From: Botryllus schlosseri
Taxonomy: Eukaryota
Assembly (NCBI GenBank): GCA_051294905.1
Contig: CM119371.1
Location: forward strand, 25,978,001 to 26,042,000
Length of the DNA stretch: 64,000 nucleotides
Direction: 5' to 3'
Positions 36,985 to 61,258 of this stretch are shown piece by piece. The position numbers were made by a program, and so were the translations under genes. Under the pieces are notes generated by a model that did no database searches, was not told the origin of the DNA, and saw only the letters and a program-made list of their open reading frames with translations. The number at the start of each line of letters is the position of its first letter. Position 1 is the first letter of the stretch.

Positions 36985-39900
36985 GGGTTAACAACATGCT
37001 GCTCGCGATCTGATTGGAGATTTCGGAAGAACGCTAAGTAAAGCATTTTGAAATGATGAAATTGATTTCATTTTCAAAATATTGTTTTTGTTGTTTGAAA
37101 ATAAGCTATTCGTCAATGCCTTACATCACTATCCCCCACTAGCTGAAACGGCTTCGGACTGCATTCCATCCAGGGAGACTCAACTGATATGAATGGGTAC
37201 ATTGTCTTACGTGCAATGGCAAAGACACTGCCAAGACCGAGACACTTACGAAGCGGCTTATATAGGGCTTGCCCGCATGGTCAAGTCTTAGGAGAAGATA
37301 CTCTTTCAGTCAGAAGAGTAGAATATTCGAATAGTTTTTCTCGCAATAATTAATCATTAGCAATGCGAATTTAAAGGGCAATTTACGGGACGATTTCATG
37401 AGCACATACTAGGGGATTCTGTCAAGTACGCTATTGCAGCAATCGGTCTGCAGAATAATTCAAAATGATTTAGTCACGCAGGTTAGAGGTCATCGATTCG
37501 ATGAGTTTATGAGCACCATTAAGCCGGCAGTCACTGGCCGTGAGCTAACTCCACCACGCACTCGTGGTAGATCGATTGCTTGTACTTTATTATTCACCAC
37601 GAAAGGCTTAAACGCGGACTTGAGTCCCGTTTCTACGCGATGCGGTGTATACTGGAGACAGTCAATCAGTTGGTACCGTTGCTCGTTATATATTTACGGC
37701 TGTAAAGAATTGGTGAAGGTAGTAATTTTTGGTTCATAATAAACTATTACCATGGATATTTGAAGAATTACACGTACCCACTCTCAAGACACTCCAAAAC
37801 TGCCTCAAGTGGAAGTAGAAAACGGGAGGTATAGGGTAGTACTCCAGAAAGAAGTTTGCAGCATATATTGGGACGGAATCGTAGCAGACTTTCGTTGGTA
37901 AGCGTTAGTCACGGAATAACTCCTGGCGATTTAAATAGGTGTGACGCACGGAGTTATCGCCCGTCACCGTCCTACAGGACCTCCTTCGCCTAGTTGTCAT
38001 GACACGTTCGTACATGAAAGCGAGGCAAATATACTTGAATAAAACTATAAGAGTTCGTTGCATAAAACTGTTGAAGTAGACGTGTATAAGTAGTCTACGT
38101 GAGTAGACAACACCCACATGAGTAGGCCTACTTCTAATATGCACGTGGTTGTCGACTGCCAACAAGCTATGTTTTTGTTGGTGACTTGATTCACCTGTCG
38201 ACTGATGGCGCAACTAAAAGCCGACGGCTAGAACAACATTTGAAACAGCTCTTTCAAAGACACCACGACACTCTGGGAAGCTTGCAAGCTGTCCCATACC
38301 GAAAACTTGGCTATCATTTGAAAAAAAAAACATATTCATTATACGTTCGCTACCATTATATTGTAAAATACGTCCATTCAGGCACTTGATGATTTTGTCA
38401 CTGCAAAACACCAAACTATTTCTAGTCTGGTCCATTACAAAAGCCACAAAAGATCGGTTCATGAATTCATTATTCTGGAGTAGATTCATAAAGCTTTTCA
38501 AATCATACACCAACTATTCTCAGACATATCATAACGCCTGTCCTGACAAGGATACCTTCCTCTGACGCTTGGATACATTTGTCTACACGCCGATTCAAAT
38601 TAATAATTCAGATTGTTGACAGCCACATCGGATTAGGGAACAATACGTCACTTAATCAGATTGACAGGCCCCGTTGTTGATTTGAGATTGACACGTTGTC
38701 ATAAACGCTGTTGCCGTCAATCGAATCAATCTTTTGTTATGCTCCGGGTTGCGAAATGCCACATGATATCCTTGAAAGCCACTTACATATAAGGGCCTTG
38801 CGTCATAGCAGTATTGATATATACAATGAGGATTGGCATAGCTGATACCAGTTCTCTGGGAAACAACAACAGCAAGTATACAGATATATTCCTGTGAAAT
38901 ATTAGAGAATCAATCACTTACAAGTGAGCTGCTGTATTGTAAGCATCTGGGAAGGAATATCAATTATCATAGTATCTCATCAACGTGTACTCCATCACTA
39001 AAGTTTAAAGCAAGCCTGCTATGGATCACATGAGAAAGAAACATTCATATTCGCGATTGAGGAGAGCCTCGTCCGCTATTGCGGCGGTGTCCAAATTCGG
39101 CTTTTTCCGCCACAAAAGCAACGCCAGAAACATGAAACGACGGGGCAGCGGCTCGGAGCGAGTCCGTCGCACCTCGAAGGGGGACGTGATGGTGAAGACG
39201 CAAGGCGTCAAGATGGGGATCCAGCAAGTGTCGAAATACTTGGCCGACTGATTATGGTGAAATTCGGGCGGTTTGAACTATAGAACTATCACGGTCGACA
39301 TTTATGGGTTACAAACCCAATACTTCACCTCTACCAATACCGATTTGTTCTTGTAACTGACTTGCATCGAGTTCCTGTGTTTCTCATGCGAAGTGTGTCT
39401 GTGTAGTATATAGTTAAAGTAGGCCCTACATGTACAATGTACAACGTACATTGCACATTGTGCAGTACAATATTCGGAGTTGAGTTGTATAATGTATACT
39501 AACGAAATCTCATCAGCTATGCGAGGTTATATGTATGCGTGAAACGCGTAATGTTATTTTGTAAATTCTTCCTGGAAAGTCGGACAAACGAACTGCATGT
39601 TTGATCTTTCTCCGTGCAGCCGTGCGAGCAACATGTAAATACATTCTTTTCACTGATTTGCTACAATGCAGTGCAGTCGACCAATTGCTTCATCGAGTTC
39701 ATGAAACAGCGGTTTCAAAATAAACAATTGTGAATTGTTGCTAGTGAGTTCGGCAATCGATATTCATCTCGGTCATAGTCATAGGGTTATTCACGTGCAC
39801 GGGCCGAACATGGCCGCAGTCCAAGGAAACTACAAGCAGATTCTACTGAAAAGTTGTAGACAAGTCAGCGCGTGAGAGTACCGAACCACGACCTGGTATA

Positions 39901-40514
39901 TCGCCCTCTTTCCATCGACACATGCCACCTTGTTTTTATCGCTTGTCTTGTCGTGTTTTGTTAAGTTATCTTTAACTTTGCATTCGGTGTGCATGCCTCT
40001 TCTTTACATCACCTATAGGACCTCATGAGTGTCTGATTTCAAAGACTACTCCCAGTCGCTTTGACAGCCACCTATTTTTTCATTGTATTGTGTGGTGTAT
40101 TGATGTGATGAAACTGTTGATAATAAACTGGAATGGTTTAACCAAAGCGGAACAGTGAACCTCATGACAGTTTTCGCTGAAGTTTATACGCCGGATGTAT
40201 CTCGGCATCAGACTTGATGGTAATCGTCAGTTTTGGGTGACAGCAGCCGTCGATACTATTTAATCTCGAGCTTGCAGATTGCGAGATCAATACGAGTATA
40301 TAACCACTGAGCTATGGCGGCTATCGTGTTCGTTAAGGGTTAAATAACTCGAAATCCAGGCAGGGCATGAACGAGACAGCCTAGGTGCAAATATCCACCG
40401 CTCTGCTGTCAAATAGACAAATATCAGCGAAAGCTGTGCTCGGGGATGCAGATCTACAGTATGCGCGGCGAGTACAGCGTACACAACACACTTCCGATAC
40501 CAAGTTGCAATGAT

Positions 40515-40520
40515 TTTAAT
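40515..40520 (-). terminator. Putative polyadenylation signal (ATTAAA) of peptide gene A
   Basis: About 90 nt downstream of the TAA; the same hexamer occurs at the equivalent position in gene C (52013-52018). Confidence 0.5.
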
Positions 40521-40606
40521 ATATATACATGGTAGAGATCTACGTGCTATAACAGTCTGCTATAGATAGTCCTTGATGCCGTGATTTTGTCCGAAGCTTT
40601 GTAATG

Positions 40607-42241
40607 TTAGCCATGTCTGTAAGAAAAAGAAAAGACGCTGGTTCTCGTAAATCACTCAACTAAAACGCTGAGACGGACTACATTTCTAAACATTCTCTGT
40701 TTCGTATATTCAGATAAGTCAAGCCATTCGTTCCAATTCATATCAAGGATGCTTGATGATAATACCATAAAAACACGAAACCTCGTCCAATTATGATGTA
40801 GTCAGCAGTGGCCGACCATAAAAATATATGTTAAAACGCTCTACTTTGTTACTGGTTCATTTTCATGTTAATTCGTATCGTCACGAATCACCCTTTTCTC
40901 CGATGCCTATCGGAATATTTCCAAATCTTCAATTGATCTTCATTTGAGATTCGGTTATACGTTCGTTACCAACACAATGCATCACAACACGGTATATATA
41001 TATATATATATATACGGGTTGCCCGACATATGAGCATGCGACACAATGGAAAACGACAGTTCAGCATGGAACACATCAGCATGCGTCACTTCAGCATGTG
41101 ACTGTATAACCCAAAAACTTACCCTAACCCGAAACATAGCCTAACCTAACCTAACCTAGCCTAACCTAACCTAAATCCTAACCCTAACCCAACCATAAAC
41201 CTAACCTAACCTACCCCTAACCCGTAATTTAACCCACATGCACATGTGTCGCATGCCAAATTGTCGCATGCCGAAGTGTCGCATGCTGTAATGTCGCATG
41301 CTCATATGTCCACGGACCATATATACGGCGATAGTAGCAATGGTGGATTACAGTCACGAGAGGGGGGAGGGCAACCTTTGTGCCATTCACAGCCGCATTT
41401 CGGTAACTCATGTAGGGCTACGGTCGCATTTCAGGGCATATCCGTAATGAACTGACTGGACGCCAAATACCTATGTTATACTGTCAATGTCCATTTCCGG
41501 TGAAAGTCAGGATTAACCTATTCATTGATATCGGCTGACTATACTCACCGAAATGGCGAGTGGTCAATGTACATGTTATGAATTGGTACGTGGGAATAGC
41601 TATTATCGCTCCATGCGCGAGAAACTTTCAGATTGACGGATGAATTTCGTCACTAATGTTAGTAGTTTCATATATTACTATCAAACATTTATCCTTTCTC
41701 ACCCCATGTGATCAGATTCACCGGTAAAGTTGATGGATATGGTGTTTGCGTAACTTTCGGGCAAGTTATAAATGATGAAGGATCCTCGGGTGGGCTAATT
41801 GTTATTAGTCACTTTGTTGCATGCTGCTATTTGTTGACATCCCATGAGGATAGTCGGAATTTCAAGATAAATCAAAATCTTTCACCAAATCGAGAGTCAA
41901 TTCGAAAATTCGATTTGCATGTCGACTGCCGCCAACACATACTAATTGAATTACTTGTCGACGGCAGCACAAATTCCCTTCTACGGCCGGGTTGGCCTCC
42001 CCTGGTCATGAGAGTATTGAACTCACGTTATACTTTCACTAATAATGCACTTTCCATTGATGCAATCCGCCATTTCAAACCAGCCATATTCACAATCGCT
42101 AGCAACGGAACACTGTTCTGCAAAAATATACGGCTTGACCAGACAAACATGGTATCTGGCAACGGATAATTCCTTACCCGCCGTTGTAGCCTGAAACATA
42201 AAGAATGCAACGGATGCTACGAATACAGCGATCAGCTCCAT
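40607..42241 (-). CDS. Peptide gene A: 54-aa secreted four-Cys peptide precursor (coding exons 42241-42178, 42117-42027, 40616-40607)
   Basis: Spliced product MELIAVFVASVAFFMFQATTA|EQCSVASDCEYGWFEMADCINGKCIISESITHG*. Introns are GTAAGG...TTTTTGCAG (60 nt, phase 1) and GTGAGT...CTTTTTCTTACAG (phase 2). All splice sites and exon lengths (64/91/10 nt) are identical to paralog C. Confidence 0.88.
41016..41318. mobile_element. Merlin-like MITE with a (CCTAA/CCCTAA)n core, in intron 2 of gene A
   Basis: GG termini, imperfect TIR (GACATATGAGCATGCGACA), perfect 8-bp TSD ATATATAC; absent from the gene C intron. Confidence 0.8.
41361..42004 (-). mobile_element. hAT MITE (family of 2081-2758) inserted about 20 nt into intron 2 of gene A
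   Basis: Colinear with 2081-2758; TSD GTCACGAG/GTCATGAG; empty site in gene C (TTTTCGTGACTGGTATCC). Confidence 0.88.
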
Positions 42242-42428
42242 ATTGTTCAGCTTCTACGTTTTCACACCTCAATATATCTAAAAACAGTAACATATGCCAT
42301 ATCAGTAAATACTACAGTGGGCGCAGAGGCTCTAGAGGCTTTGGATTCTTAGCTATAAAAATTATTTCGTATCATTCTTCAAATATTATCACGTTGGTAT
42401 CAGCAGACCTGTTAACGTCTTTAAATTA

Positions 42429-42476
42429 CGAAGACATTAGACGCATGAAATCAAAAGTGACTAATTGATATATAAT
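42429..42476 (-). promoter_or_regulatory. Putative core promoter and short non-coding first exon of gene A
   Basis: TATATA-like element, TCA initiator-like site and TTC|GTAATT donor (42429). The acceptor TTTTTAG at 42278 lies 36 nt before the ATG. The layout is conserved in copies B and C. Confidence 0.5.
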
Positions 42477-42835
42477 CAGTAGTCTACATTGCGATGCAGT
42501 ATAATTCGACATGAATTAGTCACAGCTTACGATCAGGGGCCATTAGTTATGTGGTGGAAGTGTTGAATAAGTTTAATGTAACCCTCATAGCTGAGTAGCC
42601 TGAATACATGATGTACTACACATGGATGGTGATACCGTTCCGTATTATAATCCGACATCTTCCTCATGCTTACGAATCACAGAACTGTGCCAACCGTATG
42701 TCCTGGTAAAAGGCAGATCTGCTATGTGCTAATATTTTTTATAATTTTCATGTAGAAATACCATTCCATATCTGGTACTGTAAATTACTAGTAATCAAAT
42801 TCACATGGAGTATTATTCCTTCATGTCATTCCAAC

Positions 42836-43181
42836 GAGAGTAGAGCAACGAGAAAATTTTCAACTTTTCCGAATTAGATTATAATTAGAATTATAACTAT
42901 AAAGTTTTTTCCAAATTAGATTAGAGTTAGAATTACTGAATTCGCGAAAACTCGGATCAAGCACAGTTCACATCAAGTCATATTAGTTCATTCTCATAAG
43001 AGAATGGTGAGTGTCTGTATAGCAAGCTTGGCTTTTTTCGCGCTATGCAGTTCTCCTATAGCATTTCCAGGATAACAGCATAGAAACATTTCAAACATTA
43101 GATTAGAATTAGACTATATTACCGGCTTTTGCTCTAATTGGTGTAATTAGTCAACTAGAATTATCTAATAGTCAAACAGTG
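42836..43181. mobile_element. ATTAGA-repeat-rich insertion shared by cassettes A and B (about 45963-46540) and absent from C
   Basis: Flanked by ATTCCAAC direct repeats in A. The flanks join directly in C near 53415-53425. No clear TIR. Confidence 0.6.
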
Positions 43182-43355
43182 ATTCCAACCGAGTTAAGAT
43201 TCAAGTACACGACCAGATTCATAGAAATCGTATATTCGTATCTGATTCAAATCGAGCTAAAATTTTAAAACCCAGATTGGCAACTCTGAAGGAGAATCGG
43301 CGTTGAAGTTGTTATATCCGCAACAATGAGTGATTTGAACACAGCGCCTGTGTAT

Positions 43356-43745
43356 TAGTGCGGAGTGGATCGACAAATTCTCTGGTCCGGCTCCGGCCGT
43401 ATCAGGAAAAGTACTGATCCGGCTCCAATCCGGTCCGGCCAAAAATGTAGAAGTCCGGCCAGAAATCCGGCCCTACTCGGTACGGAGGTTCCGTGAATTG
43501 ATAAATATGCCTCGTCTATGTTCACACTGCCTTGGAGGTTATTTACGTGTGGTTGGTTGGTAGTTATATAGTCATAAAAGTCATGCTTATCCATAAAGAT
43601 TCTGGCCGGATCAAAAAAGTAGTGATCCGGCTCCAATCCGGCTGTGGCCGTAACTGAAAAATACTGATCCGGCTCCGATCCGGTCCGGCCAAAATTGTAA
43701 AAATCCGGCCGGATATCCAATCCGGCTCCGGTCCATGCTCCGCAT
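43356..43745. mobile_element. MITE-like insertion with TCCGGCTCC/ATCCGG subterminal repeats, specific to cassette A
   Basis: Interrupts CACCTGTG(A/T)ATGCGCGCC, which is continuous in B and C. Imperfect terminal inversion (TGCGGAG / CTCCGCA); TSD not resolved. Confidence 0.6.
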
Positions 43746-43820
43746 GCGCTCCCGATCGGCAGATAAAGAAAGAGAACGGCTAGATAACCATGCAATTCTT
43801 TCTATACGGAGACTAATTAG

Positions 43821-44425
43821 TAGGGAAAGTTTCTGCTGCACTAAAATCACGAGAAAGTTGTACTCAATTTTAACAAAAGTTGCAGTAAAAAGTCGCATTT
43901 ACAATTCTTTAGAATTATTAGGGTATGATATACTAGAAAGGTGATTTTGTATAGCCTAATAGTTCAAGATTTGCAGTATATCTGATTATTTGTTTTCTTT
44001 CTTCACTATTCAATCGATCATGTATACACTTTTATGTTATTTAGCTTTCAAGCCTACATGGCAGCATTTCGCTATCAGCTCCTGTAGAGCTGTCAAATTC
44101 GGCACTTCCCCATTTCTTGCTTGCAAGCCATTGCGTCGTAGATAGCATTGAGATGCAGATAGTCCATCACATAGCTCTTTTTTTAGGCAAATCAAAGAGG
44201 GAATCATACTAGAAATAATTTTATAGCATGTTTTTTATATCATTCGTTTACATTTTGCGCAATACTTGATAAAATCTGCAATAAGACGTTGAATGAAAAT
44301 ATAGAAAATGTTGCACTATAAAATTCCTCCAAGCAGCTTAAAACATCATGGTACATGTATTTTGAGCATTTAGGAAGTTCGCGGCAGCTGTAAAAAAGTT
44401 GCAAAAGCTGCAAAAACTTGCCCTA
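43821..44425. mobile_element. hAT MITE (TAGGG(A/C)AAGTTT termini), specific to cassette A
   Basis: TIR TAGGGAAAGTTT / AAACTTGCCCTA; partial TSD CTAATTAG/CTAATCAT; empty site in B (GACGAATCATCC). A further 3' fragment lies at about 47460-47635. Confidence 0.75.
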
Positions 44426-44429
44426 CTAA

Positions 44430-44975
44430 TCATCCTTTTCCCCATCCTTACTTAAGACTGGGAATTACTGGAGGAGAGGATAACAATTTTCAGTTTCGTT
44501 CCAATACGGTTCTCTCTGTGCATTGTTCTGTGATATTTACTTCCGTCGTGTCAGGCTTTCGAAAAGTATATCATCCTTTAATATGTTTAATAAACTGTGG
44601 TAAATATAGATGTTTGTTTAATGACATTATATTGACATCACAATCCCGACGCCAGCCACTCCTCACCAGATTGACCAATTCAGGACGAAAATATACCCGA
44701 ACTACCGACACATATCCAGTATCCATAAACGAGAATTGTGCCAGCGGGAGAAAATAAACAGAGCGAGAGAAGCCAACATGTTCTCGTTGAGCAGCAGCGA
44801 TCGCAACATCGCTTCCCATTGGTCCTGGCCGCCAGATATTGTTGCACGCTCCGATGCTGACAGACTCTCGTTTTGCAGTAAATAGTCGCAAACCGTTCGC
44901 GCGTATCAAAACGACCGCAGACGCAAACTTCAAAGGTAAGGTCTTCGGAGCGGTTTTGGTTGCGCCCAGAATCTA
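44430..44975. repeat. Far-upstream block of the triplicated cassette, copy A
   Basis: Colinear with 46790-47335 and 61259-61880. It contains ATTGG (CCAAT box) in all three copies and TTTTGCAG...AAAG|GTAAGG in A and B. Confidence 0.85.
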
Positions 44976-45314
44976 GATAAGGGGCGGCCAACCCGTGGCC
45001 CGCGAGAAGGTTTTGAGTGGCCCGCGAGGAAATTATCAAAACATAATTACTCTGGTAATTTATTGTGAACTCGCAAGGTCTATCAAAAATTTGATTGGCC
45101 TGACCGGGAAATCTGGGATGTTGATAGCTAAAATATCAGCTACGACGCATGAACGTAGCCAAGGGCCAGCCACATTTTCTTAGATATTCGTATATCGCCT
45201 TGAAGTAGAATATTTCGCAGATTTATTTGATTTTAAATTTTTCTTCGACCTTCACACCATTTATTGTCACTCGAATTCTGGCTTTTAGTATTGGTACCCT
45301 CTTCAGAATTGAGT

Positions 45315-45573
45315 CTAACTATATACTACAGCGATCAGCTTCATATTCAACGTGTTCACACCTCAACACACCTAAAAATATAAACATAGGCCATGCCAGT
45401 AAATGCTACAGTGGGCGCAGAGGCAATAGGCAATAGGCTTTAGATTGTTAGCAATAAGAATTATTTCACCGCATTTTTCAAGGATTATAACGTTGATACC
45501 GGCTGAACAGTTAACGTCTTTAAATTACGAATACATTTTAACATATGAACTCTAAAATTGATCAGTTTATATG
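45315..45573 (-). pseudogene. Peptide gene copy B: promoter and first codons only (MKLIAV then divergence, stop at 45317-45315)
   Basis: Upstream region colinear with A and C (CATATAAA, GTAATT donor at 45528, TTTTTAG acceptor at 45372). ATG at 45344; homology ends near codon 7, and exons 2-3 are missing. Confidence 0.82.
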
Positions 45574-46789
45574 TATAATATCTAGTGTACATTGCGATGT
45601 AGTATAATTCGACATGAATTAGTCACAGCTTACGATCAGTATGTAATGTATGTATGTAATGTATGTATGTAATGGAAAGTGATGAATAAGTTTAATGTGA
45701 CCCACATAGATGAGTAGCCAGAATACGTGATGTACTATAAATGGATGGTGATTCGTTCGTGATACCGTGCCGTATTATAATCCGATATCTTGCGCGTGCT
45801 TACGAATCGTTAAACTGTGCGAACCTTATGTCCTGCTAGAATTCAGGCCTGCTCTGGGATAATATTTTAGTAATTTTCATCTGGAAATCCAATTACGTAT
45901 CCGGTACTGTAAATTACTAGTAATCAAATTTACATATAAGATTATACCTCGATGATATTCTAAATAGAGTTTAGGGATTACAAAATCTTCGCTTTTTCGA
46001 AATTAGATTAGAATTAGAATTACAGTTGCACTTTTTTTATTCGAATTAGACCGGAATTACTATTATAGCTACAAAGTTTTTTTTTCAAATAAGATTAGAA
46101 TTAGAATTACTGAATTCGCGAAAACTTGGATCAAGCTCAGTTCATATCAAATTATAGTTTATTTTCCTTGGTTGGTTGGTTGGCAGTAAAATTTGAAATT
46201 TATTTTTATTAAATTTAAAAATTTCAATTGGCTCCAAGGCAGCCCAGGCTGGTTGGAATTGGGTCAGATTTGGTCTGCAGCCTATTGTAGGCAGCCTAAC
46301 AATTTAATCATTGAATCGCCAGAATCCGGGGGAAAAATCTTACTTTTGAGCAACCACCCTACTGTACGACAAGTATGGTTTTTTTCGCACCATGCAGTTC
46401 CATAGCTTTTTCAGGATTACCAGAAGTTACATTAGAATTACATGAATAGAAACATTTTCCACATTGGATTAGAATTAGATTACCGACATTTCATTCTAAT
46501 TACTCAAATTATGCAACTGAAATTATTTAGTTGTCCATGTCCTGTTCCAATCAAGTCAAGATTTAAGCACACTACCAGAGTCGTAGAAATCGTAAGTTTG
46601 TATCTGATTCAAATCGAGCTAAAATTCCAAAACTCGGATAGGCAATTCTGAACGAGAATCGGCGTGGAAATCGTTATATCCGCAACAAGAAGTGATTTGA
46701 CTACAGCACCTGTGAATGCGCGCCTGGTTCGGCAAACAAAGAAATAGGATGACTAGATAACCATGCAATTCTCTCTCTACAGAGACGAA

Positions 46790-47335
46790 TCATCCTTTTC
46801 CCCATCCTTACTTGAGACTGTGAATCACTAGAGGAGACGATCACAATTTCCAGTTTTGTTGCATTGCGATTCTTATTGTGTATTGTGCTGTGATATTTAT
46901 TTTTGTCGTGTCAGGCTTTCGGAAAGGTATATCATCCTTTATTATGTTTAATAAACTGAGGTAAACATAGATTTTGTTTAATGACATTTTATTGACATGA
47001 CAATCCCGACGCCAACCAATCCCCACCAGATTGACATATTCAGGACGAAAATATATCCGAACTACCGAAACATATCCAGTATCTACAAAGGAGAATGGTG
47101 TCAGCGGAAAAAAATAAACAGAGCGAGAGAAGTCAACACTTTCCGGTTGAGCCGAATCGATCGCAACATCGCTACTCATTGGTCGCGCCCACTAGATATT
47201 GTTGCACGCTCCGATGCCGACAGACTCTCGTTTTGCAGCAAATTGTCGCAAACCGTTCGCGCGTATCAAAACAACCGCAGACGCAGACCACAAAGGTAAG
47301 GTATACAGAACGGGTTCGGTTCCGTCCAGAATCTT
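46790..47335. repeat. Far-upstream block, copy B
   Basis: Colinear with 44430-44975 and directly contiguous with the B upstream region. Confidence 0.85.
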
Positions 47336-49021
47336 TAACGCTCGGTTTATTAGCATTTTTTATCAGTTCAATGCACCACAAAAATGCGATAAAATGACAA
47401 TGACAGTGAAAGAATCCAGCGATCTATTCACATATAGTGCCAAATATTTCCAGTAAAAAGTTAGTTGCATGTAAAATCGAAAAGAATTTGCAAAAATGTG
47501 CATCGGAAATCAAAGAACGTTGCAATATAAGAATCCTCCAAACAGCCTGAAATACCATACTACATAACTTCTGAGTATTTAGGAAGCTGCCGGAAGCTGT
47601 AAAAAAAGTTGCAAAAGTTGCAAAAACTTGCCCTAATAATGACACTTGAAATAGGCGCAGTCTTCGAACGCATACTTAGTTTCCGTACTATAGGGTGCAA
47701 ACTTTCCCAGCATTACTCTCTACTTCTACTTTACTACAAAACCAAAAGATTAAAAAGTAAGTAGTGATGCTCAAATACTGTTTTGGGAACTAGATGTGAA
47801 AATAGTCTGTCAATGGAGTGAGTACTGTAAATAGTCAAAACAAGTCCCAGATTTTTATTCGTTCAATGACACGATTCGAAAGTGGTGCGGTGATATTCTA
47901 TGTCGAACTCGATAATAATATCATACCAAAAATCACAAACGTCCCCCTAATTTTAGTTCGGACACATGATGATTTCGGGAGGTACTTCCCATGAGCTCCT
48001 CCGATGTTGTTAGATCTGTGGTAAGTTAATGAAAGTATGCTATAAAAATGTAACGTCTCTGTCTGTTAGATTATGTTTTCGTGGAGAGCGTGTGAACAAT
48101 GTACTGAATCAATTTTGACTATGAGCGTTGGAGGACTGGCACTTGCTTAGGCACGTGTTATGCATGGTAACTCCATACTGCAATCTGAAAACAGTCTGGC
48201 ATAAAGTCGTGGTACTGTGAGATCGCATTGCATTTGTTAAATGCTACATTTGTTTCACATCATCACGAATTCTCACTTGTACTACTGTGGACATGTATTT
48301 CTTATCACGGTGAGATATGCGTATGTGCTGTGTAGTTATTTGAGCTAGGCCTAATTGAGGAACAGTGTAATTCGATTCCGATTCGAATGTCCACCGGTCG
48401 TGTCCTCCGAAATATCAGAGAGCTGCTGTGGTAAATCTTCTGGTGAGGAATATCATATTAACTTATCAACGTGATTTGCACCACTCAATTAAAAGAAATA
48501 TTAATATTGATATGGATCACGTCAGAAAAGAATATTCATAGTTGCAATTGATGGGAGCCACGTCAGCCATGGCGGCGGTATCCGCATTCGGCTTCTTCCG
48601 TCTCTAAAGCAGCGTCAGGAGCATGAAACGACGGGCAGCGGCTCGGAACGAGTCCGTGTATATGGGGTTGCCACAGCGGAACAGTGAACCTCGTAACAGT
48701 TTCGGCTGAAGTGTATACGACGGCTTTTTCCCGGCACTGAACTGAGTGGTGCTCGTCAGCAGATGGGTTTTGGGTGACAGCGGTCGACGTGGTTTAATGT
48801 CAGGCTTACAGATTGCAACACCAATGCTAGTATATGACACTGAGCTGTGGGGGCTGTTGCCTTCGACAATTGCTGGATAACAAAAATATTGAGCAGGGTA
48901 TGAACTCAACAGCGTTGGCGAAAATATTCTCGGGTCAACCATCAAAGAGAAGAGGATCAGTGAAAGCTATGCTCCGAGATTCAGATCAATAGCATGACCT
49001 GCGACTATACAGTGTACACAC

Positions 49022-51969
49022 CAGACATGGGGTAATCGCGATTAGTAATCGTAATCGATTACGACGATTACAGCATTTTGAAGTAATCGTAATCGCAATC
49101 GATTACATTCGAAAAAAATCCGAAGTAATCGTAATCGTAATCGACTACTTCCCATATCTAATCGATTTGTTTGTGAAAGAACGATTACTTTTTGTTTGTA
49201 CAAGGACTATGACATAAACTGAATATTCGTGAACAAGAATGAGATAATATACCACGTTAGTGTTAGCACAAACGTCTGTTTTCAAACGCCACTGACTCAT
49301 TATTACGTCAGAAGTATTAGCTCCGCTCGTCATTGCGTAACAAGTATCCACACATAGTAAACAGACGTGCGATGGACATTGTAGTGTGATTGTAAGAACA
49401 CCTCCCGTGGTGTATATCAGGGTATCAATACACTACAGAAGCCGCTACCTTGCAGCAGGATATTGATCACCACTCTGCCTATAGTTTCAAATAGTAACTT
49501 ATGTATTAATGTTTGGTTGTGCTTAGTTAAAAGCAGTTTACCATTGCTGCTTGGCGAGCAGGAGGCCTACGTACGCACGTGCACTTGACGAAGATTCGGA
49601 ATTTTGTACTCGTCGAATAAGACATTGCAGTTTCCACAACGAAGCATTACAAATAAACAGCTGCTGATATATATCATAACCGAGCCGTGCTTAGCCGTTT
49701 CTCGTAACAGCAGCTCGCTTTATATGTATTAAGTTGAAGGCAGAATTTTTATGTTAACCATATCTTATTCTCATATAACTACTTGAAACGGGCGTCAATC
49801 GTTGTTTCACAGTCCGTTACTAAGCATTTGGACCTGCCGCCATAACCATCCGCTTATATAGCCTGGCATGTTAGCGTGGGTTGTAGCTAGAATCAGCAAT
49901 TCAGCCAAAACAGCAATTCCCCTGTCCAACAGTTGGTCAATTTTCAAAAGTGAATTTCGTCAATAATATTGGTCATTGCATTATATTACTATTCATTTAT
50001 AACCTCTATGAGCCCCGAGTGTCAGATTTACCTGTAAAGCTGGGGGACGTAATTCATATTCATAGCATCTGGTATGTTGTTATAATTACTGTATGTTGTT
50101 AATTCGCGACCTCCAGTCCGTTGTATAATCACAAGATATTGTACTCGCCCAAACGTAGCAGACTAAAATAATATCTTTTGTGAGACGCACACACAAATTG
50201 TCATGGCTTTATTCTTTTGTGGATGCGCCGGGTGACATTTGCATTGTGGGCCCAGATCGGAAGGACAGGAGTTATTAGTCCCGCCCACTTAGCGCGGCTA
50301 TTGACAATGGACGAATACCATAAGTTTCGGCCAAGGTATTTCTTTGGTATCACATCCCGTGGAGTTGCGTGTTGGCCGAAACTGCATATGTGTTTTGGTG
50401 TGTTGTGGGATCGTGGCACGGTAATGACCGGCTACGAAATGCCTGTTCCCATAAAATATAGCCTATGTATGTTTTTTCTTGAGGGGAAGAGGTAGGCATT
50501 TCAAACCCAGCTATCTACTGGAGCAGGGGTCACCAACTGTTTTGAAACAAAAAGCTACTTCTTTTGTAGTGTGTTCTGATTATTGCGACGACCGACGGGT
50601 TACCTCGTACTCCCGTCGTTTATCCATGTTAAGTTGGATTTCTTCACTTAGAGTAAGACAATCAGAGCACTGGGCCGGGTTTCCGCCCCTTACCAAGAAA
50701 AAAACGCTCACTCGCAGGGACTCACACCAGCTCCTCCAAGCTCAGTTGCGTTGCTGCAGTGCGCGCAGAAGCGCCGATCTCCGCGTCTAGACTCGGGAAT
50801 ATTAACTATATAGATTCCCGTTGAGCCGCCGCGTGGGCGAAGACAAGCAATGCCCCGAGCGACTGCGTTCGTATGTTCCTTGGCGTCGGCCGACCCATGT
50901 TCGACTGCTGCTCATATGAAACGAGCTTCAACTATCAAATCTCTCATTTGGATATTTGCTACAGCGCAGTGGTGGCCATACGAACGTGGGGGGGGGGGGC
51001 TTGGCGAGACTTACCGGGGGCCCCCTATAAGTATCTATCCGTAACTTATGGGGGGCTTCGCCCCCCAGACCCCTCTTTCGCATCTGTTATTATTATCTAT
51101 CTATCAAGGTTTGGCCAGATGCTGGATTCGGCCATGTTTATTTTTTCATGTGTGCAAAGATACACGACATTAAAACTAAGTAATTCTACCGCATGCAGAG
51201 ACGTGATGATTATCGGGATATGGTACTTTTCTAACAAATGCAGAGATTTGATGATGATTGACACATCTGTACGGAATCCTATTCTTGCTTTACACGGATT
51301 TCCATGTTTATTCGTTATTATCCTTGAAAAAAGCGCATAATCCAAATAGGGGAGCCCTTCGGTCAGCCCCCCCTGGTGACCGCCCACCTCGCCCACCCCA
51401 AAAGCCACCACTACTACAGCGACCGCGGGCGACTCATTTGGTCCGCGTTGGTGACCCGTGTACTAGAGATATTTGAATCGCAAAGCTCGAAAAACATTTA
51501 CAAGAATTAATTAAATTCTCGAAAATGCTCTATAATATGTGTTGGTTTACGAAATACTTTTGAGTCCCCTTCGAGCACGCTCCCCACTCTATTAAGGAAT
51601 TTGGGGCGCGGCAGGTAAAGACCTGGCAATAATGCAAATCGTTGGATGCGATAAATCATCTACTATAAAGTTGGGCAATTGATATATTATGACGTAATAA
51701 GCAAATGACGCATGATGAAGAAAGTTGATATCTCATTAAGCCTTTTCATCGCAATCCTTGTATTGTCTTCCCATATATAATTTAAGATTATAGTCCTAAG
51801 CAAAACAAATGTAATCGTGAGTAATCGTGATTACTTTTGAAATGTAATCGTAATCGTAATCGACTACTTCCTGATTTTGCTGTAATCGTAATCGTAATCG
51901 TAATCGCGTGATTCCGAAGTAATCGTAATCGCAATCGATTACATTCATAAAGTAATCACCCCATGTCTG
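49022..51969. mobile_element. hAT-type element with GTAATC subterminal arrays, inserted just past the 3' end of gene C
   Basis: TIR CAGACATGGGG / CCCCATGTCTG; perfect TSD GTACACAC. The empty site in cassette A lies near 40478-40490. Confidence 0.92.
50524..51460. mobile_element. hAT MITE nested in 49022-51969
   Basis: TIR CAGGGGTCACCAAC / GTTGGTGACCCGTG; TSD TACTGGAG/TACTAGAG. Confidence 0.85.
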
Positions 51970-52104
51970 GTACACACATTGAATACCACTTTGCCATCAT
52001 TGATAATATACTTTTAATTTATGCACGGTAGAGGTATATGCGCTATCACACGTCAATTACGAATAGGTAAATCGCCTTGTGATTTTGTCCTTGGCTTTGC
52101 GATG

Positions 52105-52862
52105 TTATCCAGGCCTGCAATAAAAAGAAAAGTAACTTAGTTTTCGTATATTACTCGATAAATATTGGGTCAGACCAATACTTGATGCAATCTAGCTTTT
52201 CGTTCCAATTAATATCTAGGAGAATTGATGATAATACTATAAAAAAAACACCAAGCTTCGTCTAAAGATGATTTCGTTAACATTAAATTTTGATCCTGCA
52301 TGACAGATAAAATTTGACAATTCCCATTCTCCATACGTATTGCGGGAAAGCTGAGTACTCCTTCGAGTACACATAGGCAGACTTAAATAAACATTGAAGA
52401 TATAACTGAGTCGAACAACAGAATTTTTGAACTAGCTCTTAGATGGTTCCTTTTCATGCTAATTTGTGTTGTCACGAACCCTCTTTTTATTGGATGTCTA
52501 TCGAACAATTTCCGGATCCTCAATTGAACTTCATTTAGGTTACAGACGTACGGTCGACGGTCGTACAAAGACATTTCATCACGGATAGATAGAATTCGAG
52601 CGTTCGTAAGAATGGTGGATACCAGTCACGAAAATAATCAACTCACAAACCCAGGGAGGTATACTTGCACTCTCCGTTGACGCAATGCCGAAATTGATAC
52701 CATTGCCATTCACAATCGCTATAAATGAAACATTGTTCTGAAGAAATGTATAGTCTTGTCAATTCAAACATAGTGGCTGGCAGTGGATAATTCCTTACCC
52801 GCCCGAGCAACGTGAAACATAAAGAATGCAACGGTTACTAGGAACACAGCAATCAGCTTCAT
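52105..52862 (-). CDS. Peptide gene C: 54-aa secreted four-Cys peptide precursor (coding exons 52862-52799, 52737-52647, 52114-52105)
   Basis: Spliced product MKLIAVFLVTVAFFMFHVARA|EQCFIYSDCEWQWYQFRHCVNGECKYTSLGLPG*. Intron 1 is 61 nt with an in-frame stop, so it must be spliced. Intron 2 is GTGAGT...TTTTTATTGCAG. Same phases and exon lengths as gene A. Confidence 0.88.
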
Positions 52863-53043
52863 ATTATTCAGCTTCAACGTTTTCACACCTTAATAAATCT
52901 AAAGACCATGCGACATATGAAACAGCAATAAATATACTACAGTGTGCGCAGAGGCTTGAGAATGTTAGCTTCAAAAAAATATTTATTGAAATCCCACAAG
53001 AATTATCACGTTGATATTATAACCCGGTAACGCATTCAAATTA

Positions 53044-53090
53044 CGAATACGCTATAACGCATGACATATAAAATTGACGAGTTTATATAT
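53044..53090 (-). promoter_or_regulatory. Putative TATA box, initiator and 19-nt non-coding exon of gene C
   Basis: TATATAAA at 53090-53083, TCA with A at 53063 (27 nt downstream), donor GTAATT at 53044, acceptor CTTTAG at 52899, 36 nt before the ATG. Confidence 0.55.
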
Positions 53091-53649
53091 TATCGCTAAT
53101 CTACATTGCGATGTAATACTATTCGACACGGATTAGCCACGGCATGCGGTCAATGTTCATCGCTTATGTATAGCCTATATACACGATGTAGTATGCAAGG
53201 GTGGTGATTCCTTTGTGACAATGTTCCATAATCTAATTCGATATCTAGTGCGCACTTATGAATCATTGAACTATCCCAACCGTATGTCCTTCTAAATGGC
53301 AGATCTGCTCTGTAATGATATCTTCATAATCATCATATGGACATCCAATTCCATATCAGGTATTGTGTATTACTATAGTATTCAGATTCACATGTAAGAT
53401 TATACCTTGATGTCATTGCAATCAAATCAAGATTCTAGTACAAACCCAAAGTCACTGAAATCGTAAATCCGTAACTGATACAGATTGAGTTCTATAACTT
53501 TGAAATTATGATAGACAACTCTGAACGAGAATACGTGTGGAAATCGTCATGTCCCAGACAAATAGCGATTTGAATAGATTATAAAATCTGAAGCAGCACC
53601 TGTAAATGCGCGCCAGATAGGTAGACAAAGAACGAGGATGACTATAGTT

Positions 53650-57381: not shown

Positions 57382-59252
57382 CAGGGTTGCCATCGACATG
57401 GACCCAAAAATAAGGACAGTCGAAAAATTAAATTAGCATGAAAAATCGTTTTGTGCATACTTTGTCTTTATACGAGCCGTGGCATATCACATTCCATACT
57501 TTCACCAGAAAAAATCTACTCCAGCAACTATTAGTTATTAGAAAGTGCTTCATGGATCTCGCGACAGCTCAGTTCTAGGTTTACCTTTACTTGGGGCCGA
57601 AACAGCACTTCGTCAGCCATCCTAAAAACGTTGGTCTTGACACCTGGGGGATAAACCAAACTTCTTCACCTCGTTAGAGGCGTCAACCACGATGGAAAAA
57701 GGCCGCACACCAAGTTCAGACAAAATCCTTTTTGAGCGTATGGGGCAAAAACTCCAGTATCAATGCTTGTAGTCTTGGTCCTGGCCGAAGAAAACTTATT
57801 TGTAATGTTGGAATCGGGGAATATTGCTTTGAACAATTGCGATGTGCAATCGTTGGTGAGGAATGATTGCTGGTGTTTGACAGTATGGAATGCCCCTGGT
57901 CTGAGGTCGTTGGTGCTGATCGACTTGTGGAAAAATTATTCATCGATTGGCTCAAATTAGTCATCATGACACACTTCTTGTGTTTTGGGGTATCAATATA
58001 AGTTAAGTAGCGGTCTTTCCTGTGGCCTACAGGTTAATGTCACAATTGCAGATATTGCAATGTGCGAAACACTCGCCCTTCAATCTTCGCTAGATACCTT
58101 TGAATCCTCTCTCATAATCGTCACGAAAAACATTTTTACGCCTGTTTATTTAAATTAATCAGATTTAGCCTTATTTGTGGCTAAAACTATACGCGCAAGT
58201 GCAATATAATTTAGAGAAATTTATCAATGATTTATAGCTTTACTACTTTTTAACCAGTGTGTCGACTGCACTGCGCCTTTTTTCACTACACGCAATAAAT
58301 GCTGCCTTCCCAACAGCTTGAGGTTATTGTGCTGTAGACCAAACAGCAGTAACCTGGTATTGCTGTTTACCGCTAAAATGACGTCCGTTACGGTAGCTTG
58401 GTACAGCCGAAACTGCTGTACCACCACCCACTGACCTAACTATCTCACCACTGAGAAGTAGGGCTGGGCACAATGATTCGAGTACTCGAATCTGAATCGA
58501 GTATTAATTTTAATGATTCGAGTCGAGTAGTAAAAGACGATTTTTTCGAGTACTGAAATTATATACGCTTCTCGCCACTGAAAGTTAAAGTACCAACGAG
58601 AATTATAGTTTTTATACTATTTTTCACCGAGGAAGCCTTGAAACCTTGATTAGCCGTGTCGCAGCATACGAGACATAGTACAAAGCTACGAACGTTACTG
58701 GAATAGCATATTTCCGAAGTCGTGATCCTCCGACAACATTGTCAAGAAGTGCAATGAAATCGGTATGGTCGAAAAAATACCAAAGTATCTTTAATGTGAC
58801 GGATACGGGGCATTTTATCCTTTGTGTTGGCATAAAAGGTACATATTTTAACTTGGACGGATTACATTCTGTTGTGACGTCATAATGAGTGATACTCGAA
58901 TACTCGACTCGACTCGACTCGAAGCGTAATACGTGATTCAGAATCGAATCACTCAGGTACTCGATTTTGCCCAGCCCTACTGAGAAGTCAAATCTTGTGG
59001 TGTGTACGTCACGAGAGTTCCTTTCATTTATGATGTCATACAATCTCGATAAAAGCATAATTTTAGAATATTATGCAACATAGATACCAGAGGAAAACGA
59101 TGGAAGTTCTGTAGCGGTTGAAAATAAGACAAAATATAGACGCAAGTCGAAAATAAGGACATTTCTTAGAAATAAGGACAGTTGAGTTTTCCAAGACGTG
59201 GCCATTCAAAATATGGACAAATCTTAGAAATAAGGACGGTATGGCAACCCTG
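57382..59252 (-). mobile_element. Inverted sister copy of the 10961-13848 hAT element with decayed transposase 5' part
   Basis: TIR CAGGGTTGCCAT at both ends; colinear with 10961-13848 once inserts are removed. TSD only partly matches (CTTATA vs CTTATATA). Confidence 0.88.
58459..58979. mobile_element. hAT MITE (ACTCGA/GATTC repeats) nested in 57382-59252
   Basis: TIR TAGGGCTGGGCA / TGCCCAGCCCTA; perfect TSD CTGAGAAG; empty site in the 10961 copy (about 11228-11240). Confidence 0.93.
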
Positions 59253-60673
59253 CTTATATACATCGAAGTTTACGGTCAACATAAGGGAAATCCTCTTAGG
59301 CTAAGGTTTTCACGCTGACGATCTTTTGGCACACTTCTCGGAGTCCCATATTGGCCGGAACTGCATATGTCTTCTTGCTTCGTGGCGTGGTAATGGCCGA
59401 CGCCGAAATGCCTATTTCTATATTTTCTATAATTATGCGTATTTTTTCGTGGGGGATTCGTTAAAACATGATGTGTAATTTATGTTCATTCACCGAAATA
59501 ATTTGGGGCACCCGTCGAGCTCAAAATTAGGGGTGTGGGTTGTGGCAGTTTCGGTCCTGATAAGAGGTCAAAGTTCAGTCGATCTTTTCGGGACTTAAGT
59601 ATTGGAAATATTTCGCGCTTAAATCGCGCTCGAGAACCACTCGACTATAATAGACCATATGATAATTTTATGTGGCATATTCAGGGTCAAATCAAGGTTT
59701 TTATAAACAACAATCGGGTACGGTCTCATACCCTGTCGTTCGAACCATCCCGAATTCACATCTGCGATTAGCTATACGGGGAAGTTAATGGTATTGGATT
59801 TTGTTTCAGTGCTTTGTGTGACTAAAAGTAAGTCAATTGAGAAAGAGAATGATGGGATACATATATCTGCACACATTGAATTTAGTGCTGTATCCAGTTA
59901 ATAATTTAAACAGGAGTGTATTCCAAACAAAGCAATTCCTATTATATAGCGTTCATGTGAGGTTGTGGACCGAAACACTAGATAGTATCATCTTTTATGA
60001 TACGATGAAGAAATATTCTGACGATTTAATTTTTTAGCTCTCAAATACAAGTATACTAGGTTATTCATTTCGTGCACAAAGCTTCAAAACATATTTTATG
60101 TACAAGGGGCTCTCCCTCTCAAAAGTGATATACAGTGCCTCCTTCTTTGATTTCCACACGCTGTGCGCTGCAGGATAAAACACCTAGCTCGAAACATTTT
60201 GTTGAAAATAACCCTTGCAAGCGTGGCGGCAGTGTTTTAACGGAAATAAACCATCTAAAAGTAGGTGCAATTCATTTTACATGAATTAGAATAACCCACT
60301 ACATTTATGAAAACATATGTATCAAACATCGACGCGTAGCGCGACCAAAAATTTTGGGATTTGACATATTTTGTGGAATGTTAATTTGCTCTGAATACTC
60401 ATTAGGGATATGTCCTACTACTATATCATCTACTGCAAAGCCATTCTTCTTCGGCGCCCCCCGTATCGCCCCCCTGATCCCAGCGCCCCTCATATAGCCC
60501 CTTGAGCGTTCCACCACCTTCAAAATCCCCCAAGGGGCGCTGGAGGCAAGGTGAAGAACCACTGCTTTGGACAAATTAATAAATCTGCAGACCCCTGCCT
60601 AAATTTTGCATGAATTTCAATTAACATAATATTGACTGTTGTGCTACGCAATTACTACACTGTGTCAAATTGA

Positions 60674-60960: not shown

Positions 60961-61258
60961 CCATAGAGGTATGAAATTGAGAAAAAAAAGTTGAACCACA
61001 TTACCATGCTGAAACCCTCTCAATGTAAGCAAATTTATTGAGAGGGCTGTTGTTGTTTTTCATGAACTAAACGACTAAACTGATGTTGCAGCAATCAGTA
61101 TAATCTTAATTTAATGCATACCGGTAGAGTTTATTCTCGCGTATGCTTGAGCTTGACACATGTGCAATGTGCATTGTGCTTTTCGGAGTTAAATTAAATT
61201 AGCTTTCCCCCAATACCCATCAAGCTAATCTCTAAGGTTGGGAGCCACTGCTCTACAG

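Follow-up and report, generated by a model that had tools for sequence, protein, structure and literature searches.

Organization of the locus

The window (the whole 64,000-nucleotide stretch of DNA analysed here) carries two small genes, designated A and B, which lie in the same orientation on the minus strand, together with a truncated third copy, designated C. Reading the sequence directly, joining the exons and translating them places gene A at positions 42241-40607 and gene B at positions 52862-52105. The features of the locus, in order along each gene, are as follows.

42242..42834, minus strand: gene A upstream (promoter) block, common to genes B and C
42178..42241, minus strand: gene A exon 1, 64 nt, with the start codon, the 21-residue signal peptide and the first base of codon 22
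42118..42177, minus strand: gene A intron 1, 60 nt, phase 1, GTAAGG...TTTTTGCAG
42027..42117, minus strand: gene A exon 2, 91 nt, four-cysteine domain
40617..42026, minus strand: gene A intron 2, 1410 nt, phase 2, its length enlarged by repeat insertions
40495..40616, minus strand: gene A exon 3, 10 coding nt (T-H-G-stop) and the 3' UTR, 3' end approximate
45327..45603, minus strand: copy C, a 5' remnant comprising the promoter block and the extreme 5' end of exon 1
52863..53421, minus strand: gene B upstream (promoter) block, with motifs at 52937-52955 and 53002-53016
52799..52862, minus strand: gene B exon 1, 64 nt, signal peptide
52738..52798, minus strand: gene B intron 1, 61 nt, phase 1, with a stop in frame if retained
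52647..52737, minus strand: gene B exon 2, 91 nt, four-cysteine domain
52115..52646, minus strand: gene B intron 2, 532 nt, phase 2
51993..52114, minus strand: gene B exon 3, 10 coding nt (L-P-G-stop) and the 3' UTR, 3' end approximate

The coding exons of both genes measure 64, 91 and 10 nucleotides and are separated by GT-AG introns of phase 1 and then phase 2, with intron lengths of 60 and 1410 nucleotides in gene A and 61 and 532 nucleotides in gene B. Intron 1 begins with the donor GTAAGG and intron 2 with the donor GTGAGT in each gene, and every acceptor closes with CAG preceded by a pyrimidine tract. For intron 2, this tract contains 17 pyrimidines out of 20 positions in gene A and 16 out of 20 in gene B. 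Moving 3' from exon 2, the first strong acceptor reached in either gene is that of exon 3, and no other acceptor is conserved. Upstream of the gene A start codon, an in-frame stop is found five codons 5' of the ATG, and at the other end of the gene an ATTAAA motif lies 86 nucleotides 3' of the stop codon (40520-40515), a spacing that is identical in gene B (52018-52013). Taken at the level of sequence signals, the donors, the first strong acceptor, the stop codon and the ATTAAA motif at 86 nucleotides support the three-exon model for both genes. Splicing of intron 1 is needed, since the unspliced frame of gene B stops within the intron and homologous precursors are obtained only from the spliced models. 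If exon 3 were left unused, both frames would end immediately at the TGA within the GTGAGT donor, so that the length of the peptide differs by just two residues with or without this exon. Our examination of the sequence 3' of exon 2 revealed no conserved alternative exon and no open frame common to the two genes. Intron 2 of gene A also contains a foldback element at 41024-41310 and a repeat that also occurs at 2077-2756.

The sequence-only reading had described two spliced genes with identical exon lengths and intron phases that the ORF track had missed, and that description is borne out here. The mechanical ORF list holds only a 72-residue intron-retaining ORF for gene A and two separate pieces for gene B. 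The two genes show how a coding unit made of three tiny exons, one of which has only 10 coding bases, escapes ORF-based annotation.

The tandem arrangement proposed in that reading likewise stands, with two paralogous copies in the same orientation encoding four-cysteine peptides that bear signal peptides, and copy C is newly added to it. The upstream block of gene A is approximately 76% identical across its first 280 nucleotides, and the homology extends to 42834 with gene B and to 42982 with copy C. Within this block we observed a 19-nucleotide motif at 42312-42330 and a 15-nucleotide palindromic GATA-like motif at 42385-42399, both of which are restricted within the window to the promoters of A, B and C. 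Copy C, which was delineated by blastn, tblastn and alignment, has a single truncation and retains both promoter motifs. A search for its exons 2 and 3 found neither, and its homology to the upstream region of gene A runs on to about 46156. Searches of the window for further family members by tblastn, blastn, regular expressions and the promoter motifs returned only A, B and the remnant C. On inspection of its sequence, a weak tblastn match at 7640-7714 was set aside.

The encoded peptides and their divergence

Each gene encodes a precursor of 54 residues, consisting of a 21-residue signal peptide and a 33-residue mature peptide. As had been claimed, the signal peptides end in A-x-A or T-x-A (A-R-A in gene B, T-T-A in gene A), and the mean Kyte-Doolittle hydropathy over residues 3-16 is 2.8-2.9 in both precursors. 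The mature peptides also agree with the earlier description, in that 13 of their 33 residues are identical and both have the pattern C-x5-C-x9-C-x4-C. Across the six frames of the window, the exact cysteine pattern occurs twice, once in each gene, against an expectation of 0.01 in shuffled sequence. Both peptides are anionic, with pI values of 4.1 and 4.8. The last precursor residue is Gly in each case (H-G-stop and P-G-stop), and it is encoded by the mini-exon. A terminal Gly that serves as amide donor is a feature of animal type, amidation being carried out by peptidylglycine alpha-amidating monooxygenase.

The scaffold kept in both products consists of the signal peptide, the four cysteines, S-D-C-E, Trp, N-G and the terminal Gly. 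The remainder has changed at roughly the neutral rate, and the nine residues after Cys4 differ between A and B at the level of random sequences. The ratio dN/dS is about 0.9-1.3 in the mature part and about 1 outside the cysteines, values that fit relaxed constraint as well as diversifying selection because only two sequences are compared. At the nucleotide level, genes A and B are 81% identical in exon 1 and 77% identical in intron 1, with an identity of 60-77% in the flanking non-coding sequence.

Given this similarity between coding and non-coding divergence, the reading frames might not be expressed genes at all and might represent decaying or never-functional duplicates left by a recent duplication. 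Exon identity between A and B (74-81%) is close to that of non-coding sequence (76-77%), dN/dS is near 1, one of the three copies is already a remnant in a locus full of repeats, and no relative or transcript is known. However, in a neutral substitution model run at the observed 24% divergence, only about 4 of 10,000 trials (approximately 0.04%) kept the start codon, the open frame, the stop codon, the four cysteines and eight splice-site bases, before indels are considered. Indels are frequent in the flanks of A and B, yet none is found in the 165 coding nucleotides, and the invariant residues are precisely structural ones (the four cysteines, N-G, Trp and the terminal Gly). We consider it unlikely that the genes are non-functional duplicates. 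Judged from their sequences, A and B look real and are an ordinary kind of lineage-specific gene.

Searches for relatives and predicted structure

The sequence-only reading had proposed that the family is unnamed and had suggested profile and tblastn searches; the tblastn search within the window is described above, and none of the tools that we used places the peptides in a named family. A HMMER profile search against 1.84 billion protein representatives returned 0 hits at E <= 0.001. This profile drew on the 72-residue gene A ORF together with both exon pieces from gene B; it is short and includes 20 intron-encoded residues of gene A, which lowers its sensitivity, so that relatives scoring below about 40 bits would escape the search. 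A word-indexed protein search with the spliced precursor of gene B gave no candidates, and sequence searches of the PDB gave nothing significant, whether the query was a single peptide, the two-row profile or just the core. Scanning the precursors with Pfam produced only sub-threshold matches to Nodulin_late (17.0 and 20.8 bits) and to the Dumpy DPY module (11-12.4 bits). Looking for exact copies of the 72-residue gene A ORF in public assemblies yielded no record, and a full-text literature search on the peptides found no paper. The 20-nucleotide stretch of exon 1 that is identical in A and B has one metagenome match, which falls within a bacterial gene for a membrane protein and is due to chance. 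Rfam and ARAGORN, applied across the window, reported nothing, and Pfam gave nothing usable for the transposon ORFs of the window.

AlphaFold models built from two-row alignments are of moderate confidence, with pLDDT values of 72.7 for peptide A and 68.7 for peptide B. Both models separately place strands at residues 16-19 and 22-25 around N-G. The model of peptide A also contains a four-residue helix at residues 5-8, which is absent from the model of peptide B. The models show, as a prediction, a short turn or helix together with an NG beta-hairpin. The best Foldseek matches are BmBKTx1 (E 2.8) and TsTX-K-alpha (E 9.6) for model A, and 1OIG, a DPY module, for model B (E 3.5, TM 0.48/0.54, 35% identity over 23 columns), none of which is significant.

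The resemblance to the DPY module bears on a second alternative, namely that exons 1 and 2, although real, form part of another transcript, which either ends by read-through or splices to some other exon, making the cysteine domain a module of a longer protein. In both genes, reading on past exon 2 runs straight into the TGA of the donor and would give a peptide two residues shorter that lacks the terminal Gly, and gene B has an AATAAA 155 nucleotides into intron 2. The spacing of the four cysteines resembles that of the DPY module (Pfam E 0.16-0.43), and 1OIG is the top Foldseek match for peptide B. Against these points, the GTGAGT donor is a perfect consensus conserved in both genes, no strong acceptor lies nearer than the proposed one, no other acceptor is conserved, and A and B have no alternative downstream frame in common. 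The first 400 nucleotides of gene A intron 2 contain no poly(A) signal, and the phases of exon 2 (1 at its start and 2 at its end) are unlike those of a shuffled repeat module. We regard this alternative transcript as quite improbable.

Proposed origin and comparison with known systems

Based on sequence, genes A and B, which are accompanied by the truncated copy, most likely specify small secreted peptides stapled by disulfides. The reading that we favor, and that we hold to be somewhat better than an even chance, is that A and B are real, lineage-restricted paralogues encoding fast-evolving, secreted, probably amidated peptides with two disulfides. Under this favored reading, local tandem duplication would have given rise to A and B, and a third copy would have decayed to a 5' remnant. 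A conserved promoter would drive each gene, and the three exons would be spliced to encode the 54-residue precursor. The 21-residue signal peptide would direct entry into the ER and be cleaved after T-T-A or A-R-A, releasing a 33-residue product that two disulfides would hold as a compact mini-protein. In this product, an N-terminal loop or short turn would pack on a C-terminal beta-hairpin, with the invariant N-G between Cys3 and Cys4 forming a tight turn. From the terminal Gly and by analogy, we suggest that the invariant Gly encoded by the mini-exon could act as an amide donor to yield a 32-residue amidated peptide, and that the released peptide could bind an extracellular partner through the acidic, aromatic-rich Cys2-Cys3 loop and the variable tail.

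The combination of a constant scaffold with a near-neutral remainder, the lack of relatives and the tandem arrangement of the genes suggests a peptide of the effector type, such as those of venom or saliva or those with immune-modulating, reproductive or host-microbe roles. On sequence grounds, a conserved hormone poorly fits a pattern in which the scaffold is held while the rest changes, in genes that are tandem and free of relatives. The negative charge of both peptides argues against a membrane-lytic cationic antimicrobial peptide. Thus, the defence role raised in the sequence-only reading fits poorly in its cationic antimicrobial sense. Lineage-restricted genes for small secreted cysteine-rich peptides are common, and because orphan genes of this kind are found in most animal genomes, the locus alone opens no long-standing question. 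If expressed, the peptides would constitute a new sequence family within the small secreted disulfide-rich peptides, and their scaffold (a 21-residue signal peptide, C-x5-C-x9-C-x4-C, an N-G hairpin and a terminal Gly) provides a search pattern for the rest of the family, both in the genome of origin and in those of its relatives.

Among known systems, the DPY module of Drosophila Dumpy (PF21164; PDB 1OIG) is a unit of similar size, with approximately 21-24 residues and four cysteines. Its cysteine spacing is C-x5-C-x5-C-x4-C, and its fold, in which disulfides join Cys1-3 and Cys2-4, has an N-terminal loop covering a small beta-hairpin (10.1101/2025.09.16.676614). CREMP and truncated EGF are similar two-disulfide modules with a loop over a hairpin. 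The first and last cysteine spacings of DPY are those of peptides A and B, whereas the middle loop has 5 residues in DPY and 9 in A and B. A hairpin is predicted in both of our models, and the Pfam scores fall short of the DPY cut-off of 27 bits. DPY is an internal repeat between the EGF modules of a giant matrix protein; in contrast, A and B are stand-alone units with a signal peptide and a stop codon. Downstream of the genes we found no EGF-like exon common to A and B, and the cysteine pattern occurs just twice in the window.

The CS-alpha-beta toxins and defensins share with A and B a small secreted product, a tight hairpin with cysteines on both strands and a tandem family organization, and many toxins are C-terminally amidated. 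The peptides could conceivably be reduced members of the defensin or scorpion K+ channel toxin lineage that have lost one disulfide. Local matches link the C-x-N-G-K-C hairpin to alpha-KTx 3 toxins and margatoxin, and peptide B to nasonin-1M, and model A, with its four-residue helix before the hairpin, has two K+ channel toxin folds as its best matches. As in A and B, the signal peptide of nasonin genes is followed by an intron of phase 1 (PMC2853521). However, every sequence and fold match is non-significant (E 0.3-10), the alpha-KTx matches in the PDB span just the 12-residue C-x-N-G-x-C hairpin (E 0.3-2), and the best match of model B, which lacks the helix, is a different fold. CS-alpha-beta peptides have six cysteines with CxxxC and CxC motifs, form three (or four) disulfides and are mostly cationic, whereas A and B are anionic, have four cysteines per mature peptide and contain only C-x5-C ... 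C-x4-C; when they are aligned with the toxins, two of the four cysteines are left without canonical partners. We conclude that A and B very probably lie outside the CS-alpha-beta group and that descent from that lineage is very improbable. Of the link drawn in the sequence-only reading, only a local likeness is supported.

The four-cysteine NCR (nodule-specific cysteine-rich) peptides of legumes have, according to that reading, the spacing C-x5-C...C-x4-C. The likeness that it drew in cysteine spacing holds and extends to gene layout, and Nodulin_late (PF07127) is the top Pfam match of both precursors over nearly the full profile (E 5e-4 and 8e-3), although both scores lie under the curated cut-off of 30.4 bits. 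NCR genes carry the signal peptide on their first exon and the mature peptide on the second; in pea, a third exon supplies the final few residues in 7% of NCRs, and anionic members account for 43% (PMC9515463). The mature peptides of NCR genes have 20-50 residues and four or six conserved cysteines, a description that agrees with the 21 + 33 residues, the four cysteines and the three-exon layout of A and B (PMC9515463). A fixed set of four cysteines, many anionic members, extreme divergence outside the cysteines and clustered duplicated genes are further points of agreement (PMC9515463; 10.1101/2025.09.09.675119). Taken literally, these similarities would make A and B legume-type NCR genes of a known family and the window plant DNA. 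However, the Nodulin_late match requires the signal peptide and the cysteine domain jointly and vanishes if the two are scanned separately, and no protein was recovered when 1.84 billion representatives were searched with the profile. The features of the genome also point away from a plant, as the window is rich in transposable elements yet has a CpG observed/expected ratio of 1.05 at 41% G+C, its repeats are of the TTAGG type rather than TTTAGGG, and the first introns are only 60-61 nucleotides long. Relatives of an hAT element in the window have neighbouring ORFs that bear PF27046 (FAM200-GTF2IRD2-like) and PF26215 (HTH_animal), and the conserved terminal Gly of A and B differs from NCR peptides in being an amidation signal of animal type. 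A plant NCR origin is, in our estimation, highly improbable, and the earlier description of the family as animal is likely correct, supported indirectly by the CpG ratio, the TTAGG repeats and the animal-type hAT relatives. The likeness to NCR peptides is architectural only, and the best interpretation is that both converged on a minimal secreted peptide with two disulfides; the closely matching layout of legume NCR genes would make an elegant example of such convergence. We rate as doubtful a broader proposal, in which A and B are the visible members of a hitherto undescribed animal family whose amidated, anionic peptides with two disulfides converged on the NCR design in cysteine spacing, exon layout, tandem expansion and free divergence outside the scaffold. 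If it were true, the array might run on past the right end of the window, and the family might act where its bearers meet other organisms, in venom or saliva or in controlling microbes or symbionts.

Gene models and predicted precursors

Two tandem minus-strand genes, here called gene A and gene B, had been proposed by a sequence-only reading, and when the proposed exons were read from the sequence, joined and translated, its models were reproduced exactly.

Gene A coding exons: 42241-42178, 42117-42027 and 40616-40607, minus strand
Gene B coding exons: 52862-52799, 52737-52647 and 52114-52105, minus strand

The coding exons of both genes are 64, 91 and 10 nt long. Intron 1 (60 nt in A, 61 nt in B) begins with GTAAGG and ends in CAG behind a T-rich tract, and intron 2 (1410 nt in A, 532 nt in B) begins with the perfect consensus donor GTGAGT and ends in an acceptor with 17 of 20 pyrimidines in A and 16 of 20 in B. 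Each precursor has 54 residues. In residues 1-21, a charged position 2 is followed by a hydrophobic core of 14 residues (Kyte-Doolittle mean 2.8-2.9) and by small residues at -3 and -1 (T-T-A in A, A-R-A in B). The remaining 33 residues carry the pattern C-x5-C-x9-C-x4-C and are acidic in both peptides, with pI values of 4.1 and 4.8 and net charges of -5 and -2. A and B agree at 13 of these 33 positions, namely E-Q-C, S-D-C-E, one Trp, Cys3, N-G, Cys4 and the last Gly.

The third exon is only 10 nt long, and its acceptor is both the first with at least 16 of 20 pyrimidines 3' of exon 2 in each gene and the sole such acceptor inside the block conserved between A and B, in agreement with the original choice. 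This block comprises the acceptor, a Gly-stop and an ATTAAA that lies exactly 86 nt past the stop in both genes. Splicing of exon 2 to some other downstream exon had been named as a rival; no alternative open frame common to A and B was found 3' of exon 2. If the exon 2 donor is ignored, both frames end immediately at the TGA inside GTGAGT, so the alternative product would be two residues shorter and would lack the terminal Gly. The three-exon structure is the best in silico model for both genes.

Several observations argue against chance. In six frames of the whole window, the exact cysteine pattern occurs at two sites only, those in A and B, with 0.01 expected in shuffles. The unspliced frame of gene B meets a stop within intron 1, so only splicing links its signal peptide to its cysteine domain; once spliced, A and B yield collinear products. 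Outside its coding sequence, the duplicated unit shows 60-77% identity with indels; the 165 coding bases show zero net length change between A and B. Under a neutral model of substitutions only, at 24% divergence, approximately 0.04% of trials kept the start codon, an uninterrupted frame, the position of the stop, all four cysteines and the eight splice-site bases together. Pattern uniqueness, the need for splicing, constant coding length and the rarity of neutral survival are together good evidence that A and B have both been preserved as coding genes over most of the period since they were duplicated. The two spliced four-cysteine genes were correctly observed and are probably real.

Between A and B, dN and dS are 0.20 and 0.27 for the signal peptide, 0.57 and 0.62 for the mature part, and 0.36 and 0.28 for the Cys1-Cys4 region, and the nine residues past Cys4 differ as much as random sequence. 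These values and the random-like tail indicate that scaffold residues are retained and others change at about the neutral rate, a pattern that, with two sequences, fits diversifying selection and relaxed constraint alike.

Organization of the locus and its surroundings

A third, 5' remnant copy of the family (copy C) was found by blastn, tblastn and two promoter motifs.

45603-45327, minus strand: copy C
42312-42330, 45406-45424 and 52937-52955: 19-nt promoter motif, starting codon of each copy 62-75 nt downstream
42385-42399, 45484-45498 and 53002-53016: 15-nt palindromic GATA-like motif, ~140-155 nt upstream
44.3-45.0 kb, 46.8-47.6 kb and 61.25-61.9 kb: repeated segment between units
40142-40491 and 48671-49026 (also 38923-39167 and 48417-48657): shared block, ~72% identity, downstream of A and far downstream of B
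41024-41310: foldback, MITE-like insertion in intron 2 of gene A, bordered by (TA)n
41364-42009 (gene A intron 2) and 2077-2756 (inverted, near the window's left end): repeat, 79-84% identity

Copy C consists of the promoter block and no more than the very beginning of exon 1; a single truncation removed the remainder of the gene, and neither exon 2 nor exon 3 was found anywhere nearby. All three copies have the same orientation, and their upstream homology extends 600-830 nt past the ATG. Neither the 19-nt nor the 15-nt motif occurs in the window outside the three promoters (chance expectation 0), and both are candidate regulatory sites. The segment at 46.8-48.3 kb (46775-48276) is collinear with 61.25-63.96 kb (61251-63957), which suggests that the stretch separating the genes in the tandem unit is repeated at the window's right end; the array may therefore continue, with another gene copy just beyond 64000.

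The ~72% block may be a SINE or a piece of the duplicated unit. It carries tRNA-like box A and box B motifs, and neither ARAGORN nor Rfam called a tRNA there. A 31-nt stretch right after the 3' end of gene B is repeated exactly ~2.8 kb on (49080-49148 and 51916-51946), and the G+C-richer DNA (~45%) between the repeats may be an insertion. Intron 2 of gene A is enlarged by the foldback element and by the repeat shared with 2077-2756. The foldback has inverted 76-nt arms made of ~15-nt repeats and a core array of TTAGG/CCTAA-type pentamers (41140-41222). The longest ORF at the locus (41708-42169, plus strand, 153 aa) crosses the intron 2 repeat, lies antisense over exon 2 and looks spurious.

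Elsewhere in the window, the following features were identified.

24833-25330, plus strand: retrotransposon-polymerase-like frame (C-terminal part), by resemblance
15355-15945, minus strand: 197-residue open frame that has a single clear transmembrane segment and a region rich in Ser/Thr
10701-13848, 57382-59258 (inverted) and 20876-22004: hAT-type element, several fragmentary copies, DUF4371/FAM200-GTF2IRD2-like by relatives

The polymerase-like frame has a 90% identical protein in the Logan assembly of run SRR25569773, probably from the same or a close species. The 197-residue frame, whose sole Pfam match is faint (ECSCR, E 0.011), may be the terminal exon of a membrane protein.

Comparison with known families

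[quoted passage not shown] Scanned singly, neither the signal peptide nor the cysteine domain matched Nodulin_late, and Dumpy_DPY was the sole remaining match (11.7-12.4 bits, cut-off 27). Were the window legume DNA, A and B would be known NCR genes, but this is very improbable, as several features speak against a plant. The CpG observed/expected ratio is 1.05 at 41% G+C, although the window is rich in transposon debris; CpG is not depleted across it as a whole, and G+C is 38-45% throughout. Its telomere-like repeats are of the TTAGG type only, strong pyrimidine tracts mark the 60-61-nt introns, and the terminal Gly conserved in A and B is an animal-type amidation signal. Moreover, relatives of the hAT element (10.7-13.8 kb; 56-75% identical as protein and 83-96% identical as DNA over short terminal stretches) have adjoining ORFs with PF27046 FAM200-GTF2IRD2-like and PF26215 HTH_animal. 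These relatives are located in the ENA long-read assemblies ERZ22157276, ERZ25067582 and ERZ21736675. No Rfam families or tRNAs were found in the whole window.

A word search of protein collections gave zero candidates, and a profile search of 1.84 billion protein representatives gave none at E <= 0.001; the profile rows were exact window translations, comprising the gene B exon pieces and a 72-residue gene A ORF that includes intron-encoded residues. A tblastn comparison of the spliced sequences with retrieved loci yielded nothing noteworthy. A PDB sequence search gave nothing significant, the best matches being nasonin-1M (E 0.4) and, through their C-x-N-G-K-C hairpin, alpha-KTx 3 toxins and margatoxin (E 0.3-2). 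AlphaFold2, run on the exon 2 pieces with two-row alignments, gave pLDDT values of 68.7 (B) and 72.7 (A). In both models, strands 16-19 and 22-25 flank N-G, and just ahead of Cys2 lies a three-residue turn in B and a four-residue helix in A. Foldseek against the PDB returned the DPY module 1OIG first for model B (E 3.5, TM 0.48/0.54), then engineered cystine-knot peptides; for model A, two scorpion toxins headed the list, BmBKTx1 (E 2.8) and TsTX-K-alpha (E 9.6). Neither model had a significant match, and the paralogues point to different folds. The sequence-only view of an unnamed secreted four-cysteine family of NCR-like design stands, with no significant match to a characterised family in protein collections or the PDB and Pfam matches below cut-off, while its reliance on the CS-alpha-beta fold does not.

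Proposed role and relation to known systems

We regard the gene structure, conservation and predicted precursor features of A and B as established, and consider it somewhat probable that they are expressed secreted-peptide genes; any particular role is much less certain. The precursor would enter the ER and lose its signal peptide, and the mature peptide would form two disulfides and a hairpin around N-G, its terminal Gly serving for amidation. Once secreted, it could bind an extracellular partner through the acidic aromatic Cys2-Cys3 loop and the variable tail. A and B keep their signal and scaffold but diverge freely elsewhere, occur in tandem and lack relatives, which is more in keeping with a fast-evolving effector peptide than with a conserved hormone. 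Their negative charge makes them a poor match for a cationic membrane-lytic peptide.

A and B form a lineage-restricted family of small cysteine-rich peptides, which is nothing unusual in kind. Nasonins are six-cysteine CS-alpha-beta peptides with a phase-1 intron behind the signal peptide (PMC2853521). DPY modules have the pattern C-x5-C-x5-C-x4-C, a loop-over-hairpin fold and bridges 1-3 and 2-4 (10.1101/2025.09.16.676614); they share the outer spacings x5 and x4 with the A and B peptides, but their middle spacing is x5 rather than x9. IRLC-type NCRs resemble no known proteins and may have originated de novo (10.1101/2025.09.09.675119), and 43% of pea NCRs are anionic (PMC9515463). Pea NCR genes have a signal exon and a mature exon, and 7% of them encode their final few residues in a third (PMC9515463); genes A and B likewise have a signal exon and a mature exon, followed in both by the 10-nt third.
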